Of a stretch of DNA of 64,000 nt, positions 1,211 through 59,434 are shown piece after piece. The stretch lies in sequence record OZ196285.1; one strand, given 5' to 3'. A model generated the notes under the pieces. That model searched no databases. It saw nothing but the letters and a program-made list of their open reading frames with translations, and had not been told where the DNA came from. Every line of letters begins with the position of its first letter. The stretch's first letter is position 1. A program made the position numbers and the translations under genes.

Positions 1211-1942
1211 ATGGAACGAACAGAAATCGTAATTCCGACGACTAGCGTTAGAAATGCGGGTTACGAGTTTGAAGTAATTGACACAAGCAAGCTAGATCAC
1301 TTTCATGTACGTTGCGTAACGAATACATTGTACGACAATCAGATTCAAGGTTCTAAACTAGACGGCTTTCGTGCCGAAATAACTTTAATGGACGCAGAAT
1401 CACTAATATTCTTGAACTCAATGAATCTTTATGCTAACTTTACTGAGTCGAACCGTGCAAATAATGGAATGAAGCGAATTAAGTCGGCTCGACATGATTA
1501 TTATCACTATTATCAACAACAAGAGGACTGGTTTAAAGGCATACTCAAACAACACAAGATTACAGTAAAATACCCCGGCGGAGAAACACGAAAGAAGCTT
1601 CCCAAGTTCTACACGTGTGGTCTGCGTTTGTCGAATGTAAGACGTTCGGCAGATAAAGCGTGCGCGATGCTCGTTCTCGACGAGTGCGGCAAGCCGTTGG
1701 TCTATGCTTTTGCAATCGGTAAACTTAGGTACGTTGTGGATGCTTATGATAGAACTATCAACGTTAACTGCCCTGCTCAAATAGGGAAAAGAACAGTTGA
1801 CGTAATCGAATGTTTAGATTACAATGACGGAGACGATTGGAATGACGAAAATGAGCTAGAAGAGACTCATAAAAAGATTGTTATTCCAGATGTATCCGAT
1901 TTAGACAAAGTATTAATGTCACTAGATGAAGAAGAGCTTTAA
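1211..1942 (+). CDS. Hypothetical protein
   Basis: 243-aa ORF with SD GGGGAG and an upstream promoter; no family recognised. Confidence 0.75.
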   Translation: MERTEIVIPTTSVRNAGYEFEVIDTSKLDHFHVRCVTNTLYDNQIQGSKLDGFRAEITLMDAESLIFLNSMNLYANFTESNRANNGMKRIKSARHDYYHYYQQQEDWFKGILKQHKITVKYPGGETRKKLPKFYTCGLRLSNVRRSADKACAMLVLDECGKPLVYAFAIGKLRYVVDAYDRTINVNCPAQIGKRTVDVIECLDYNDGDDWNDENELEETHKKIVIPDVSDLDKVLMSLDEEEL

Positions 1943-1946
1943 TTAT

Positions 1947-2255
1947 ATGATGAACGAACAGCCAGTAACAAACTACACCGATATGTCAGAACTAGCACTA
2001 GACATCGCAGCTTATGCTTCACTATTAGTAAAAATGGGTCACTGCGATTGCGTGACGAATCAAAAACTTTTCGTTGAAATGTGCAACGAAGCAGGCTTTA
2101 GAACAATTACAGGTAAAGAATTCAGTCAAATGTCATTCAGAAAGATGTTTTTCCGATTACCGAAACGAATCAAAGATGAAGTACGCAAGATTTTCGAATG
2201 GGGCGACAATGCACCAGGCGAATCTCTATTAGAATCAGTTTATAATGTACATTAA
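1947..2255 (+). CDS. asiA: AsiA-like anti-sigma70 factor
   Basis: ASLLVK..D.V.N...F....NE.G....G....Q.SFRK aligns by eye with T4 AsiA. Start moved from 1926 to ATG 1947. Converges on the holin-position gene as in T4. Confidence 0.8.
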   Translation: MMNEQPVTNYTDMSELALDIAAYASLLVKMGHCDCVTNQKLFVEMCNEAGFRTITGKEFSQMSFRKMFFRLPKRIKDEVRKIFEWGDNAPGESLLESVYNVH

Positions 2256-2263
2256 GAGGCAAC

Positions 2264-2557
2264 ATGAATTTCGAAAGAGCACTAGAAGCAATTAAAGACG
2301 GGCTGCGCGTGCAGCGTGAGGGTTGGAACGGTAAGGACATGTTTGTTGTTCAGATGCCGGCTCTATATCTGCCGCCATACAACACACAAGAACCCGGTCC
2401 TAAAGTGAACGACCGTACTGCTAAACACATCGGCGAAGATACGCCACTTGACTGTCAGCCGTATATCGCGTTGTTTACTCAAGACAAACTATGGCAACCT
2501 GGGTGGTTACCCTCTCAAGCAGATCTGTTTGCTGAAGACTGGGAAGTTTTAGATTAA
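2264..2557 (+). CDS. DUF2829 protein, Tad2-like (Thoeris anti-defence)
   Basis: MNF..AL..K.G..V.R.GWNGK.MF and GW.PSQ.D..AEDW motifs. Confidence 0.85.
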   Translation: MNFERALEAIKDGLRVQREGWNGKDMFVVQMPALYLPPYNTQEPGPKVNDRTAKHIGEDTPLDCQPYIALFTQDKLWQPGWLPSQADLFAEDWEVLD

Positions 2558-13192: not shown

Positions 13193-13203
13193 TGTTTACC
13201 GCC

Positions 13204-14844
13204 TTATGCGAAAATAAAATCGATTGATTTAGATGTCGAATTGTATTCAATCGTTGCAGCCCCATCGTCGAAGTTCATTTCAGAACGACCATCGTGTTGC
13301 ATAGGGCTGCCGTTGTATGTTACTGCGTCGGCTGAACTTGCACTCGTTGTTGAGTCAATACGCAGTGTGTTTTTAGAACCTGCGCCTGCACGCAACTCGA
13401 TTCCTTCAGTTGCACCAGTCCCGTCTAAGTCAGCTTGAATGATCACACTTGCGTTCGACTGCAACGTAGGTGATGAATTACCACCCATCAGATTCAAAAA
13501 GTATCCGATTGACGAACCAACGATAGAGTTAGTACCAATCGTCAAGTTACCAGTCATCGAATCACCAGTCGCATTCACATAACGGCTGTCTAGCTTCGAC
13601 GTGTAGTTACCCATGTGGATAAGATCGTGACCGTTGAACTCAACTCCGTTAATGTCCGTCCCTCCGCCGCGAACGCGCAACGTGTTCAGACCTGCTTTTA
13701 GATTTAAGTATCGTGTTGCTTCGTTATCATTAGAATCGGCTTCAATTGTGATATCACCGACCGATTGCATATCAATCGACGTGGTATTGAATTTCAGATT
13801 ATACGATGCATTCGAACCCTCAAGACCATGACCGACTTCAAACCGAATATCAGTGCCTTTCATGTCAAGGTCGCCTGCGGTAGTGAATTCCCAGTTGTCA
13901 CCACTCACTTTATTACCACGAAACGCAACTAATGAACTATCATCCCCATCCCCGATGTAAATCGTATCTGAGTATATGTATGTAGTCGGTGCGCCTGACT
14001 GAATGTAAAAATTACCGCCAGTGAATGCTGTTCGACCATCAGAGTCTGTATAGAAATACCCGTTGCCTTTATCGCCAAGATAAACTCTAGGCGCGACCAG
14101 CGCAGTGTCAGAACTCACGTCCCCGTCGAACGATGCTGCACCGTTGCCTAAATTAAATTCAATTCGCGATATATCAAGGTCGCGGTCGATGAATCGCAGC
14201 AGCTTAGAAACGCTGTAGTCAATACCTGCGATGTATGCAGAGTTTTGAAATTGCAATTCAGATGAGTAAGACGTACCATTATCTTGCAGAACTATGTCAT
14301 CAGTAAATATAACTTTACCAGAGAACGTGTTATCGCCATCAGTACCTGCATAACGCGAGTCAAGATACGTCGTATAGTTGCCAGTATGAAGCATTTTGCT
14401 CGTAGATGAACCGTCGTAATAATCGAAATTACCGTCATGATCGAATTTCCACGATTTATTCGAATTAGTCGATTGAATCATGAACTCATTGCCGTCAGTC
14501 CCTGACGTACTACCCAGATATGTCAAATTCCATGCATACGTAGAATTACCCATGCGAATCCACGCATCAGTGCCACCAAGAGTGTCGCCACTGCCATCAG
14601 ATACGCCACCATCAATTGACAACGCAAGTCCTGTTTTGTTTAGATGCAGCGGGCCGCTCATCGAATCGCCTGCGCGTTTAACAACAGATTCAGTCAAGCC
14701 GGTATGCGGGTCTGGTTTGTCGTTCTCAGTGTAAATTTTATAGCCGTCGTAACGAATCGAATCGCCCTGTGGATCGAAACGTAAATTCCCTCCGTGCCAT
14801 ACTATGTTACCGCCAATCGCGGTAGTTGACTTTAATTCTGCCAT
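13204..14844 (-). CDS. gp36-like proximal fibre or hinge connector
   Basis: First 24 aa identical to the 1270-aa fibre; GD.M.G.L motifs; C-terminal IEYNSTSKSIDFIFA. Confidence 0.8.
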   Translation of the reverse strand: MAELKSTTAIGGNIVWHGGNLRFDPQGDSIRYDGYKIYTENDKPDPHTGLTESVVKRAGDSMSGPLHLNKTGLALSIDGGVSDGSGDTLGGTDAWIRMGNSTYAWNLTYLGSTSGTDGNEFMIQSTNSNKSWKFDHDGNFDYYDGSSTSKMLHTGNYTTYLDSRYAGTDGDNTFSGKVIFTDDIVLQDNGTSYSSELQFQNSAYIAGIDYSVSKLLRFIDRDLDISRIEFNLGNGAASFDGDVSSDTALVAPRVYLGDKGNGYFYTDSDGRTAFTGGNFYIQSGAPTTYIYSDTIYIGDGDDSSLVAFRGNKVSGDNWEFTTAGDLDMKGTDIRFEVGHGLEGSNASYNLKFNTTSIDMQSVGDITIEADSNDNEATRYLNLKAGLNTLRVRGGGTDINGVEFNGHDLIHMGNYTSKLDSRYVNATGDSMTGNLTIGTNSIVGSSIGYFLNLMGGNSSPTLQSNASVIIQADLDGTGATEGIELRAGAGSKNTLRIDSTTSASSADAVTYNGSPMQHDGRSEMNFDDGAATIEYNSTSKSIDFIFA

Positions 14845-14883
14845 TGAAAAATTCCCAATTTATGAAAATAAGATATATGACAG

Positions 14884-14890
14884 TATTTAG
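14884..14890 (-). promoter_or_regulatory. Late promoter variant CTAAATA
   Basis: Upstream of 14844. Confidence 0.6.
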
Positions 14891-30565: not shown

Positions 30566-30834
30566 TATTCTGCTTCTTCTTCTGTAGTTTCAGCAGGGCG
30601 TTCAGCCTTGCCAGTTAGAATCGCGATTTCGTCAACGTAATTTTGAAGCGAACCTGCTTTCTCTTGATCGAAATCTAGAAGTTGTGCTAGTACACCAACG
30701 AACTGACCGAATGATTGACGTTCAGCAGAAAGTGCTTCTTGTGTGTCGAACTGACGTACTTTCAGATCTTTTACTTGACCTTGTAGCTGTTCGATTACTT
30801 GTTCTGGAGTTGCTTGTTGTGACATGTTATTCAC
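30565..30834 (-). CDS. 57A: gp57A tail-fibre chaperone
   Basis: Coiled coil, LK.R.FD..E motif, synteny between 1 and 57B. Confidence 0.8.
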   Translation of the reverse strand: MNNMSQQATPEQVIEQLQGQVKDLKVRQFDTQEALSAERQSFGQFVGVLAQLLDFDQEKAGSLQNYVDEIAILTGKAERPAETTEEEAE

Positions 30835-31474
30835 CTATAGTTAAATTGTCGATTTGTTCATAAAGCTCTTCAAGTGAGCCGTTATTGTCTATTTGAACTG
30901 CGGTCTTAATATGACCAAGTTCTGTGTCGCTAATGTGATTTGATGCAAGCGAACCGTTTCGGTTAACTTGAAGCATCGTGCCACCAAGCTCATATACTAA
31001 ATTCAATTCGTTTTCGAATCGCACATCAGTAATTATAAACGTTAAATCAGCGTTGTTAAACACCATTTCGTTATATTTGTTTCTAGCGTAATTAACCCAA
31101 TGTTGATCGTCGATTGAGCGTGCTACGTCAGTACCAGCCATTTGCAATAAGTCGCGAATGCTGAATAATCCGATGTGAGGCAACAAGCAGTAATATACGT
31201 AATGCCAGTCAGCGTCTACATTGGCGTATTCGCAACATTGCAATACGATTTCAATAGATTCATCAAGTGAGAAAGTCGGGACTTCTCTGTCAAAATTATC
31301 TTGCCCATCAATGTCTGCATACGAATATCCGTATTCTGCAAGCCCGATAAGCAACCCTTCTTTAATAGGATCAGCGAATTTGTAAATAAACGTCTGATCA
31401 CTATGAGTTTCTTTAATGGCATGTGCTACGGTGTCTTTGCCCGAGCGTTTTTGTCCATTTATTCCTATAATCAT
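30827..31474 (-). CDS. 1: gp1 deoxynucleoside monophosphate kinase
   Basis: IIGING.KRSGKDT, FADPIK, R.LLQ..GT, ITDVRF.NE and HISD motifs. Confidence 0.95.
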   Translation of the reverse strand: MIIGINGQKRSGKDTVAHAIKETHSDQTFIYKFADPIKEGLLIGLAEYGYSYADIDGQDNFDREVPTFSLDESIEIVLQCCEYANVDADWHYVYYCLLPHIGLFSIRDLLQMAGTDVARSIDDQHWVNYARNKYNEMVFNNADLTFIITDVRFENELNLVYELGGTMLQVNRNGSLASNHISDTELGHIKTAVQIDNNGSLEELYEQIDNLTIGE

Positions 31475-31506: not shown

Positions 31507-31535
31507 ATTATAGACGGAAAGCAGGTGATTCTAAA
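31507..31535 (-). promoter_or_regulatory. Early promoter
   Basis: TTTAGA-17-TATAAT. Confidence 0.7.
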
Positions 31536-31557
31536 CAATATGGCAATGCGTCGCTCA

Positions 31558-31621
31558 TTTCTCTAATATCTCTAATTTCCCTAATACCCCTAAGTGTACT
31601 AATACTACTAAGATGATGCGG
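31558..31621. repeat. Six tandem 9-bp iteron-like units plus GATGATGCGG, copy 1
   Basis: Units end in CTAA at 9-bp period; an inverted copy lies at 57561-57624. Confidence 0.85.
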
Positions 31622-31683
31622 TTTTTTCGAGCCAAGGCTCTCCAACCGACACCAGTCAAATCCTGCCGCTATCGCTCAGTCCT

Positions 31684-31705
31684 AAAAAAGCCCCTATTCG
31701 GGGCT
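31684..31705 (-). terminator. Terminator after gene 3
   Basis: AGCCCC-GAATA-GGGGCT followed by a T run on the minus strand. Confidence 0.8.
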
Positions 31706-31714
31706 ATTATTGAG

Positions 31715-32248
31715 CTAGGGAGTTATCGGACTTATAATAACTTCAGTTCCATCGACTTTATGAACCATTTCAAAGTAAGCATATTCGAAATCAACATCGC
31801 AGGTAACTGCTTCAACATCACCTGCTTCTGTGTAGTTCCATTCAACAGCACTTAGACTCTTAGGGAATGCGTTGATGAATCGATATGTTGCTACGATATG
31901 TTCCTTGTTATTGTCTAGTACATGCAGCAACAACGTAACTGGTACAATGCCATCACTTGTACTTGCACCTGTTGGGTTGTTCATTGTTATCATCCAACGA
32001 TACAACTCAGCATATGCTTTCATGTCTTCATCGACTAGAAATTGAATCGATAGGTCGTCGTAACTTGTACCTGAACCTGCAACGTTGTTGTTTGCTAGTT
32101 TAGCGTACTTCGGACCTCGATTGATACTTGCTACTTCCATATTGACACCAGGGATAGTGGCAGTTTGAATCTGCCACACGAACGTACCCGTTGCGTTGTT
32201 ATCTGGTACATCAATACGGAAATTGCTTTTCGTAGTAATGTTTTTCAT
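31715..32248 (-). CDS. 3: gp3 tail tube terminator
   Basis: Q.A.IPG, YDDLSI.FLVDED...Y.ELY.W and V.F.Y..F motifs. Confidence 0.9.
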   Translation of the reverse strand: MKNITTKSNFRIDVPDNNATGTFVWQIQTATIPGVNMEVASINRGPKYAKLANNNVAGSGTSYDDLSIQFLVDEDMKAYAELYRWMITMNNPTGASTSDGIVPVTLLLHVLDNNKEHIVATYRFINAFPKSLSAVEWNYTEAGDVEAVTCDVDFEYAYFEMVHKVDGTEVIISPITP

Positions 32249-57449: not shown

Positions 57450-57485
57450 AGACACGTATATTGTATCTTGAAATACGTTGATAAT

Positions 57486-57513
57486 AAACGAGTGATACTA
57501 GTATCACTCGTTT
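57486..57513 (+). terminator. Perfect 28-bp palindrome; likely terminator after gene 12
   Basis: AAACGAGTGATACTAGTATCACTCGTTT followed by further Ts. Confidence 0.65.
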
Positions 57514-57560
57514 TTGTATCCCTGAATACCAAGCGAAATGAATCGAGAGGCGGAAAAATT

Positions 57561-57624
57561 CCGCATCATCTTAGTAGAATTAGTACACTTAGTGATATTA
57601 GAGATATTAGAGATATTAGTATAA
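57561..57624. repeat. CCGCATCATC plus six tandem 9-bp TTAG units, copy 2 (inverted)
   Basis: Reverse complement of the 31558-31621 array. Confidence 0.85.
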
Positions 57625-57632
57625 TATCCTTG

Positions 57633-57661
57633 TTTAATCTCAGAACGTTCACTGCTAGTAT
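57633..57661 (+). promoter_or_regulatory. Early-type promoter next to the array
   Basis: TTTAAT-17-TAGTAT. Confidence 0.5.
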
Positions 57662-57748
57662 AGACACATAAAGATAAACCCTCCTTGATCCTTTGTATTG
57701 CTATAAATAGTAGTAAGCTATGTTCATTTACAATACAAGGGAACAAAC

Positions 57749-59434
57749 ATGACAATTCAAAAGCCTATCATTGAAGAGCTTAGATATGTAAATGGTCAAC
57801 CAGATCCTGCTCAACGTCCCGATCAAACTCGTATCAATTGGGCGAAGAACGGAGAAAGCATTAACGGTGCATCTGGTGACACGACTTCCGACGGCGTTCT
57901 TAACCGAGCACCTGTTGAAATTCAAGAAAACGTATTAAACTCTCATCACAACACAAAAGCACAGCAAGTAACAATCGAAACCCTAGTTGATACTGTTAAC
58001 GAGCTAACCGGTGGCGAAGATGCCGACTTGGGCACTCGTATTTCAACGAATGAGTATGATATTGAAGTTCTTCAGACGCAAACTACGAATATTATCGCAG
58101 ATGTTGGGACCCCGTCGAACTCAGATACACTTGCGACTGGTTTACATCGAACTACCGAAGATATTATATCGGACGTTGGTGTGCGTAACCCACAAGACAT
58201 GCCAAACGACGTTGAGAACAACGACACTGTGCGCAAAGATTTGTATTTCATCAAGCGACGTATCGGTAATGATCGTAACTATGATGTTAACGGAAATCTA
58301 GTACCTGATACCGTACCAACCGGCATGAAATATCAGATTGACGAACTGTACAATCGTGTTGCGACTGTTAATCAGGAGATTGGGGAAGATAGTCAACCGT
58401 CAACGATCAATGGTCGCATTTCAGAACTTGAGCAGAATTCACAAGCCGGTTCGGTTGCTGAAATACGTAATGAGTTAGGTGATTCAGAAGATGCAGTCGA
58501 GGGTCGTACCGTTTACTTGCGTCTTGATGACATCGAAAGTGCTCAGGCTGACATTGTGATAGATGTTACTTCTATTGAAACTACGATTACTGCTCCTGAT
58601 ACGGGATTGATGTCTCGTGTGCAAGTTATTGAAGGCGAGCAAATCACATCGAACGCGCAACTTGACGCAAACACTCTGACAATCTCTAGCGTGTCGTCAG
58701 ACATCGGAGATTATTCACTAGGTGATTCATATAATGGATCGATGAAAGCTCGTCTGAGTACGCACAGCGACGATTTATCGGCATTGTGGACTCGTATCGG
58801 CACTACTGACGACGTGACGGGTTCTATCGGTGAGCGTGTCAAACTTCTAGAGAACTCACTGGGTGATACTAACAGTCCTGTTGAATTTACCGCGTGGTTT
58901 GATATTCAAAGCAACGCAGCAGATATTCTTCAGCTTCAACAAGATTTAGCAACAGTAACACCGTTGGCAACTGCATTCGTTGCCCCTGAAACCATCGAAT
59001 CTCGCATTGACACTCTTGAAGGGAATCGTGCGTATGCACTGCTTTCATCAGAGACGCCAGAAAATATCAGTTTGACGACATCGTTTCAGAACGTTGCTGA
59101 TATAGTTGACGAAGAGCTTGAGCTTGACGGATACACGTTCGTTAATGGTGCAATCGTTCGCGGTAGTGGTTCAACTCAGACAAATATGACAATCGCGTGG
59201 GTTCTATACGAGCCGGCCGACCACGAGCATATTGTGACCGTGCGTGTTGAAGTTACTCACCCTGATACAACTGTTGAAATCGATGATTACACTCGCAAGC
59301 TTCGTGGCTTGACTGTTACTCCGATTGCGATTAGTCATACGGTTAATTTAGTTGAGGGTAGTGAAATTCGAGTTCATATCGTGTCTGATAGTGTAAGTGA
59401 TGTCGAACACGATTCTTTATTCATTCGACTATAA
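57749..59434 (+). CDS. wac: Fibritin (whisker)
   Basis: L.YV.G.P...Q..I.W.KNGE...GA...G.LNR N-terminus, long coiled coils; TATAAATA upstream. Confidence 0.92.
   Translation: MTIQKPIIEELRYVNGQPDPAQRPDQTRINWAKNGESINGASGDTTSDGVLNRAPVEIQENVLNSHHNTKAQQVTIETLVDTVNELTGGEDADLGTRISTNEYDIEVLQTQTTNIIADVGTPSNSDTLATGLHRTTEDIISDVGVRNPQDMPNDVENNDTVRKDLYFIKRRIGNDRNYDVNGNLVPDTVPTGMKYQIDELYNRVATVNQEIGEDSQPSTINGRISELEQNSQAGSVAEIRNELGDSEDAVEGRTVYLRLDDIESAQADIVIDVTSIETTITAPDTGLMSRVQVIEGEQITSNAQLDANTLTISSVSSDIGDYSLGDSYNGSMKARLSTHSDDLSALWTRIGTTDDVTGSIGERVKLLENSLGDTNSPVEFTAWFDIQSNAADILQLQQDLATVTPLATAFVAPETIESRIDTLEGNRAYALLSSETPENISLTTSFQNVADIVDEELELDGYTFVNGAIVRGSGSTQTNMTIAWVLYEPADHEHIVTVRVEVTHPDTTVEIDDYTRKLRGLTVTPIAISHTVNLVEGSEIRVHIVSDSVSDVEHDSLFIRL

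Follow-up and report, generated by a model that had tools for sequence, protein, structure and literature searches.

A short intergenic cassette is repeated around the genomes of KVP40-like Vibrio phages and apparently represents an undescribed, conserved DNA module of these phages. Its core consists of a hairpin (5-9 bp, AAA loop), the linker ATC, and five or six touching 9-bp units containing TTAG. We interpret the cassette as a strand-specific site of unwinding and loading, in other words a replication origin module, with a probability that we put at roughly 40%. The DNA analyzed, hereafter the window, comprises the final 64 kb of the genome of Vibrio phage F86 (OZ196285.1, 228,383 bp), a KVP40-like relative of T4; window positions equal record positions minus 164,383. 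An origin or loading module is favored because of the instability of the arrays, the spread of their copies, the mini-hairpins, the position of one copy at uvsY, and the likeness to the repeat modules of chromosomal islands. Co-orientation with genes, a composition bias of one strand, and hairpins on that same strand point to a function on or through one opened strand. A promoter-linked regulator site accounts for much of the same evidence.

The gap between gene 3 (tail completion; 31715-32248, minus strand) and gene 1 (dNMP kinase; 30827-31474, minus strand) holds one of the two window copies, copy D, with its parts on the minus strand in the order gene 3 terminator, GCGATAGC, small hairpin, CCGCATCATC, six TTAGNNNNN units, promoter and gene 1. 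The array of six 9-bp TTAGNNNNN units (31558..31611) has TTAG fixed in 6/6 units and spacers made almost entirely of T, A and G; read on the plus strand, CTAA is constant in the six units at an exact 9-bp period, followed by GATGATGCGG (31612-31621); six 9-bp units are what the earlier note had described for this gap. The pattern TTAG-N5-TTAG-N5-TTAG has eight overlapping matches in the window, all within the two arrays, against 0.01 expected from shuffles, and both arrays were also detected by Tandem Repeats Finder. On the array strand, GATGATGCGG becomes CCGCATCATC (31612..31621), which comprises the 3' arm of the core hairpin (hairpin 2) and the ATC linker, and CCG(C/T)(A/C)TCATC or a close variant was found in 29/29 copies.

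Copy D lacks the usual 5' arm of hairpin 2, beside a 17-nt insertion, and stands alone among the five F86 copies in having this hairpin unpaired; a substitute hairpin specific to copy D, GAGCC-TT-GGCTC, lies at 31629..31640 (minus strand). Further 5' on the same strand are GCGATAGC (31668..31675), a mini-hairpin of the GCGNNAGC type whose orthologues read GCGAAGC in KVP40 and nt-1 and GCGTCAGC in D482, and the intrinsic terminator of gene 3 called by a terminator scan (31684..31705; stem 31705..31689 plus T run). At the other end, 22 nt from the array, a sigma-70-like early-type promoter, TTTAGA-17-TATAAT (31507..31535, minus strand; 10/12 letters), is directed to gene 1, which bears out the claim of an early promoter facing away from the array. 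Five phages have orthologues of the gene 3/gene 1 copy, with flanks about 77% identical between phages. The letters constant among the five are those of TTAG, of the 3' arm of the hairpin, of GTTTAGA (the -35-like box) and of TATAAT.

The second array of the window, copy E, also comprises six TTAGNNNNN units (57571..57624, plus strand), directly preceded by hairpin 2 (GAGGCGGAA-AAA-TTCCGCATC) with its ATC linker (57547..57570, plus strand). Farther 5', behind the tail-collar-fibre gene, a hairpin and T run resembling a terminator (57489..57515, plus strand) were recognized by eye and left uncalled by the scan. On the 3' side, TATAAATA (57702..57709, plus strand) stands before wac (fibritin, 57749-59434) and is presumably a T4-type late promoter motif. 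The second copy had been presented as inverted, 26 kb away and of the same geometry; the opposite orientation and the distance (26.0 kb) hold, and the likeness in geometry is partial, the promoter scan having called no sigma-70 site after copy E. Open reading frames annotated as 'hypothetical protein' overlie both arrays (VPHF86_0317, 31508-31645, minus strand; VPHF86_0343, 57468-57671, plus strand) and are probably artefacts of a repeat that is free of stop codons in one frame.

A pattern search across the whole F86 genome (228 kb), the check that the earlier note had asked for, found exactly five arrays, two of them in the window, each with 24/24 TTAG letters. They lie at record positions 21.9, 63.3, 106.4, 195.9 and 222.0 kb (spacing 26-90 kb); a reversed control pattern gave 0 arrays across this genome, and a relaxed scoring scan of it gave no degenerate sixth copy. 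KVP40 and nt-1 each carry six syntenic arrays and D482 five, at matching intervals round the genome (26-54 kb in KVP40, computed from coordinates). The extra copy of KVP40, termed X, maps into the long gap of F86, which has no X copy. A blastn search with copy E returned 292 places in 51 records, all of them KVP40-like Vibrio phages and mostly with six per genome, and a search of IMG/VR added only KVP40 and VH7D.

The aligned F86 copies share an element of about 85 bp, and TTAG is constant in units 1-5 of nearly all 22 aligned phage copies. Spacer identity was 0.62 within a genome versus 0.63 between orthologous loci, giving no clear signal of concerted evolution. Among contigs from sequencing runs, which tend to end at the arrays, a 97%-identical relative keeps the array length. 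Searches of 401 representative genomes of Vibrionaceae with a four-unit pattern, and of 285 Vibrio genomes with ATC plus three units, gave no phage-like array, and a search of a plasmid collection gave nothing relevant. One chromosomal look-alike from Vibrionaceae (L155 1480-1540, G114:C23), with a hairpin and four TTAG units, was judged to be a chance resemblance because it lies inside a 292-aa ORF of Leu-Ser-Ser repeats with no homology to F86 or other phages. Taken together, the alignments and searches indicate that the TTAG arrays are under strong purifying selection and are specific to KVP40-like phages and to islands of their hosts. A literature search found no published description of the cassette, with an earlier mention in the KVP40 genome paper possible (PMC180978; Miller et al. 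2003); a full-text search for KVP40 together with iterons gave nothing, and a 2025 Schizotequatrovirus paper makes no mention of intergenic, direct repeat or origin of replication.

Several properties of the cassette distinguish one DNA strand from the other. The array is co-oriented with local transcription at 6/6 loci and in the islands, which for six independent loci plus islands would arise by chance about 1 time in 100. The array strand is nearly free of C (T 472, A 414, G 280 and C 22 over 22 phage copies), and the hairpins are on this same C-poor TTAG strand. Spacers have position-specific preferences, unit 1 being nearly always TAG(A/T)A. Hairpin 2 of the phage copies is typically GAGGCGGAA-AAA-TTCCG(C/T)(A/C)TC, with 5-9 pairs; in KVP40 copy D it reads GCCCAA/TTGGGC, with two pairs altered on both sides, and in F86 copy B pairing is kept via two G-T pairs. 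The alignments thus lend modest covariation support to hairpin 2, modest because the stem is otherwise conserved in sequence.

Within 40 nt 5' of hairpin 2, 12/29 copies (islands and metagenome copies included) carry GCGNAGC or GCGNNAGC, in the versions GCGAAGC, GCGTTAGC and GCGTCAGC, against a chance expectation of about 0.02 per copy by our own arithmetic. In F86, the only mini-hairpin among the five copies is GCGATAGC of copy D, which lies farther out because of the insertion. Sequences of the form GCGNAGC/GCGNNAGC, the 'mini-hairpin DNA' of Kimoto and Hirao, occur in the priming origins of G4, St-1 and alpha3, near ssiA of RSF1010 and in N4 early promoters (PMC13037366). The arrays are also exceptionally unstable: by nearest-neighbor energies, the five 54-bp arrays of F86 rank in the 99.66-99.99th percentile genome-wide for low duplex stability. 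Of the 2000 windows within +-1 kb, just 1-3 exceed the array in instability, and AT content is 69-78% as opposed to 56% for the genome.

The surroundings of the core vary among copies. Most copies are preceded by an intrinsic terminator, and F86 copies A-D have a good sigma-70-like -35/-10 pair 0-30 nt 3' of the array, the last unit overlapping the -35 in copies A and B. In KVP40 and nt-1, the X copy takes up all of an 80-nt gap that separates two co-directional ORFs, and it has no terminator and no promoter; the start codon of the next ORF is in the last unit, and a unit supplies AGGAG. Since the next ORF starts in the last unit, inside a co-directional run of genes, the X copy must be transcribed. 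Terminators and promoters vary, as copies E and X illustrate, and hairpin 2 plus the array is therefore the universal part of the cassette.

The X copies, with their start codon and AGGAG embedded in the units, are among the observations that would suit a role in RNA. Carried on polycistronic or read-through RNA, the hairpin and six UUAG motifs, within an unstructured stretch free of C, would then bind a multimeric RNA-binding protein, like TRAP with UAG/GAG or HutP with UAG, and control termination, processing or translation. Strand specificity together with co-orientation with transcription would be consistent with such a role, as would the tolerance of hairpin 2 for G-T pairs (G-U in RNA), a promoter-like unit that points into the island cassette, and the match of six units to a hexamer. 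We nevertheless consider an RNA role unlikely: most copies follow a strong intrinsic terminator and precede the gene's own promoter, and so lie outside the main transcripts, and the short reading frame after the array is unconserved between islands. Nor was an Rfam family matched, copy D giving no match and copy E only chance-level matches far below the gathering score.

The main rival to a replication origin is a regulatory array upstream of promoters, a possible if doubtful function. A DNA-binding protein, specified by the phage or the host, would coat the units, in the manner of MetJ, omega or ParR on tandem 7-11-bp repeats, and activate, repress or insulate the downstream promoter at boundaries where a late gene gives way to an early or middle one, and in the islands the same arrangement would serve as an infection-responsive switch. 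The placement of most copies between a terminator and, in copies A-D, a promoter at most 30 nt away would fit such an element, and the consistent co-orientation with transcription agrees with it, as does the island core, which heads a leader running toward a modular ORF. The genes 3' of the arrays include uvsY, gene 1 and the gene 55 region, which are early or middle genes in T4.

A further argument for transcriptional control comes from the phage regulators. F86 has an AsiA gene (window 1926-2255, plus strand), and searches of F86 and KVP40 detected no MotA domain; another partner that re-targets RNA polymerase is therefore expected. A 243-aa ORFan (window 1211-1942, plus strand; PHROG 15600) overlaps the start of asiA by 17 nt, is syntenic in relatives and could be a partner of AsiA; its AlphaFold model is unusable (pLDDT 38). 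As a binder of the array the same protein is a possible but unsupported candidate, with no Pfam match, close relatives in phages only, and no significant similarity to island proteins. If the cassette were a promoter element, it would show how an AsiA-bearing phage without MotA redirects transcription.

Regulation or insulation of promoters explains other features poorly. The array lies anywhere between 0 and 30 nt from the -35, and these distances show no helical phasing. Copy E lacks a called sigma-70 site and its gene, wac, is served by a late promoter; the X copy is without any promoter. The number of sites, five or six per genome, is small beside the dozens of middle promoters of T4, and a protein that binds the duplex would leave the near absence of C on one strand and the mini-hairpins unexplained.

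A replication origin, our preferred interpretation, would make use of these strand-specific features. The AT-rich array would be the easiest local place to melt, and could be opened by negative supercoiling behind the early promoter firing outward or by a transcript through the array; the hairpins on the coding-sense strand would then fold and keep the array open. A phage-specified or host factor would bind the array, either as a duplex or through its unstructured, C-free TTAG strand, and would recruit a T4-type helicase/primase or prime synthesis. What the sequences show is the anatomy, copy number, conservation, orientation, composition and instability of the cassette and its capture by islands; each of these steps, as well as origin function, we infer.

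Comparison with T4 is mixed. T4 has five or more early origins (PMC3016281), which the five or six spread arrays of F86 and KVP40 resemble, and copy A lies directly 5' of uvsY, the site of oriF in T4 (PMC3016281). The T4 background given in the earlier note was accurate: oriF and oriG use promoter-primed R-loops, and oriE has nearby repeats, iterons that have never been tied to origin activity (PMC3016281). Like the cassette, oriE belongs to a phage of the T4 family, has direct repeats by an early-type promoter in the tail/baseplate region, and is conserved syntenically with its role unproven. Its iterons are 12 nt long, evenly spaced and present at one locus (PMC3016281), whereas the cassette has a 9-bp period, five or six dispersed copies, and a hairpin and mini-hairpin that precede the array.

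The cassette shares with oriF and oriG a very unstable AT-rich element beside a promoter, several origins (here candidate origins) per genome, and, for copy A, the location at uvsY. In oriF and oriG, however, the unwinding element lies 3' of a MotA-dependent promoter; in the cassette, the unstable array lies 5' of a promoter with early-type -35/-10 boxes that faces away from it. Neither a hybrid-forming downstream unwinding element nor a MotA middle promoter, the two marks of T4 R-loop origins, was thus found; a transcript entering the array by read-through from its 5' side may nevertheless occur. T4 origins furthermore share no sequence motif, whereas the cassette copies are near-identical.

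Plasmid and satellite iteron origins (RK2, R6K, RSF1010 with ssiA/ssiB, PLE) provide a second comparison. As in these origins, the repeats are tandem, direct and non-coding, and an adjacent AT-rich unwinding element is present, in the form of the array itself. RSF1010 ssiA also has strand-specific hairpins of the mini-hairpin type; the motif of single-strand initiation signals (G4 origin, ssiA type) was found in 12/29 copies, as GCGATAGC in copy D and as CCGAAGG in island leaders, and is absent from 4/5 F86 copies. Iteron origins have a Rep protein, whereas neither the phage nor, judged by fold, the islands yielded one of the Rep type: none of the array-neighbor genes examined had a Rep-like Pfam/PHROG match, and a profile of the island ORF family against F86 found nothing (E > 0.5), leaving the array without a cognate initiator among these candidates.

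The units themselves are 'iteron-like', as they had been called, in form alone, because they share only 4/9 positions and abut without spacers. Classical iterons are 17-22 bp long, conserved over most of their length and usually helically spaced, and a 9-bp period with four of nine letters fixed is therefore a poor fit to them. Ribbon-helix-helix proteins bind touching short repeats, 5-10 in a row, near promoters (MetJ 8-bp boxes, omega 7-bp heptads, ParR 10-11-bp repeats). The cassette is nearer to these tandem boxes than to classical iterons, and a period other than the helical repeat would, by this comparison, imply a protein spiral round the DNA. The sites of ribbon-helix-helix proteins differ in having neither strand composition bias nor flanking hairpins, and no such protein was found for the cassette.

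On balance, the candidate origin put forward in the earlier note gains from a conserved, multi-copy and spread cassette, from its instability and priming-type hairpins, and from island capture, and loses from the failure to find an initiator and from an X copy that is transcribed and has no terminator or promoter. Also counted against an origin are the GC skew along F86, which shows no switch at the arrays, and the location of all five arrays inside co-directional gene blocks, away from strand switches and co-oriented with the surrounding genes. The lack of the X copy in F86 and the mini-hairpin in one of its five copies weigh on the same side, as does a modular island ORF with no recognizable initiator fold.

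The island evidence derives solely from a metagenome scan (TCATC plus three units) and from protein look-ups. The scan found the full core on four contigs (L243, L229, L220 and L223) that otherwise resemble F86 neither in DNA nor in protein. L243 carries the Thoeris genes ThsA/ThsB and a BsuBI/PstI-type restriction-modification pair as cargo, as well as a chromosomal M32 peptidase gene. F86 has a Tad2-like (anti-Thoeris) gene directly after asiA (window 2264-2557, plus strand), and Thoeris is present on the TTAG-bearing L243. Relatives of a conserved island ORF (about 205 aa) number 98, and every named one is in a Vibrio chromosome, with hosts that include V. parahaemolyticus, V. alginolyticus, V. 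vulnificus, V. harveyi, V. splendidus and V. lentus. Six further contexts (L271, L272 and L274-L277) belong to one family of islands inserted beside a LysE/M32 locus, with a set of core genes, a serine recombinase and defense cargo that varies (AbiC, GmrSD, kinases with PP2C, TIR proteins).

In L271 and in L272, a single complete TTAG core is preceded by GAGCGAAGCG and by a hairpin with CCGAAGG. It is set in a 1.4-kb non-coding leader that runs toward an ORF of about 340 aa; about 70 bp alone of this leader match F86. Out of a whole phage genome, the islands thus carry only this core, which is therefore singled out as the piece recognized in trans. At 13200-13600, the leaders contain three promoter-like units ending in GCTATACAAGTCAAA, two of which bracket the TTAG core, with a conserved, structured-looking stretch after them. 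From its sequence, the bracketing looks like an insertion of the TTAG core by recombination at that unit.

Among the island contexts readable in this region, the TTAG core is present in four and absent in three. Islands without it have GCGAAGCG, a hairpin and an array of another motif at the equivalent place, before the modular ORF: ten TTCATTNNN units with a 9-bp period in L276 (10947-11036) and seven TTCTANNN units with an 8-bp period in L274 (about 14830-14885). These TTCAT and TTCTA arrays had no match in phage records. The ORF behind the island repeats is conserved over its C-terminal 40%, and its N-terminal halves are interchangeable; between L271 and L272 both the repeats and the N-terminal half differ. 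Such joint change of a repeat set and the N-terminal half of the adjacent ORF is the behavior of an initiator and its iterons. The initiator label is one that we infer from this behavior, because the ORF has no Pfam match, no PDB sequence match and no usable Atlas match, and its model (pLDDT 71) retrieved nothing by Foldseek at E <= 0.001. The islands may also use the TTAG core for something other than replication, since separate repeats of their own adjoin the modular ORF.

These observations permit a wider proposal, which we offer tentatively: the hairpin and TTAG core could be the cis handle of a KVP40-type initiation system, acting in origin firing or promoter activation through one phage factor, and could have been captured by Vibrio islands at the LysE/M32-peptidase locus such that infection switches on or amplifies the island. 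Islands with the same core would then be fired, or would sense infection, on the arrival of such a phage. This would constitute a new helper/sensor relationship between T4-like phages and satellite-like defense islands, and the island capture points to an interplay between virulent T4-like vibriophages and mobile islands with Thoeris, restriction-modification, AbiC, GmrSD and kinase cargo.

Two resemblances between island and phage proteins were the only ones seen. The F86 gp45 sliding clamp (record 73499-74164) has a counterpart of 227 aa with 44% identity in L271 (18032-18715, minus strand), encoded beside a serine recombinase, and this island protein may be a decoy or a hijacked phage clamp. 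The conserved first gene of the island core, encoding 187 aa, is weakly similar (E ~1e-4) to F86 VPHF86_0017 (L194 16096-16692, minus strand; 198 aa, PHROG 16422).

The bracketed island core also bears on DNA transactions other than origin firing: initiation of packaging, condensation or partition, a polar barrier to forks or transcription, or a selfish recombination cassette comparable to PeSL elements and passed among phages and islands. PeSLs combine an AT-rich stretch, -35/-10 boxes, a stem-loop and a Shine-Dalgarno sequence, occur in many copies clustered in hyperplastic regions, and mediate shuffling in nt-1 and KVP40 (PMC4122927). They resemble the cassette as short, conserved intergenic composites of promoter and stem-loop in these same phages, with modular exchange implicated in both. 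The cassette differs in sequence and in its order of terminator, hairpins, array and promoter, and it occupies six fixed sites. We regard this group of functions as quite unlikely. Even spacing round the genome, the duplicated promoter-like units about the island cassette, suggestive of insertion by recombination, and a ParA-like ATPase near the cassette in one island variant would accord with one or another of them. The six syntenic loci are, however, stable across relatives and, with the strict constant letters, argue against recent mobility, and the ParA-like gene is unconserved among islands. As for packaging, the T4 type has no known requirement for specific sites.

If the cassette is indeed an origin, it would be, for the T4 family, the first case of a sequence-defined origin or recognition module present at every origin of a phage. 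T4 is the long-standing model of phage replication; no motif is common to its origins, and what the oriE repeats do has been debatable for 25 years (PMC3016281). With six near-identical and sharply bounded candidate sites, the KVP40-like phages therefore make the question of repeats as origins directly testable.

Arrays with a 9-bp period were also observed outside Vibrio, on contigs of Alistipes/Tidjanibacter MAGs (L046, L048, L058, L067, L074, L086, L097, L124 and L132). These gut Bacteroidales arrays are of the TTAGGGAGT/TTAGGGAAT type, are often followed by the inverse motif, and form a recurrent family unrelated to the TTAG cassette.
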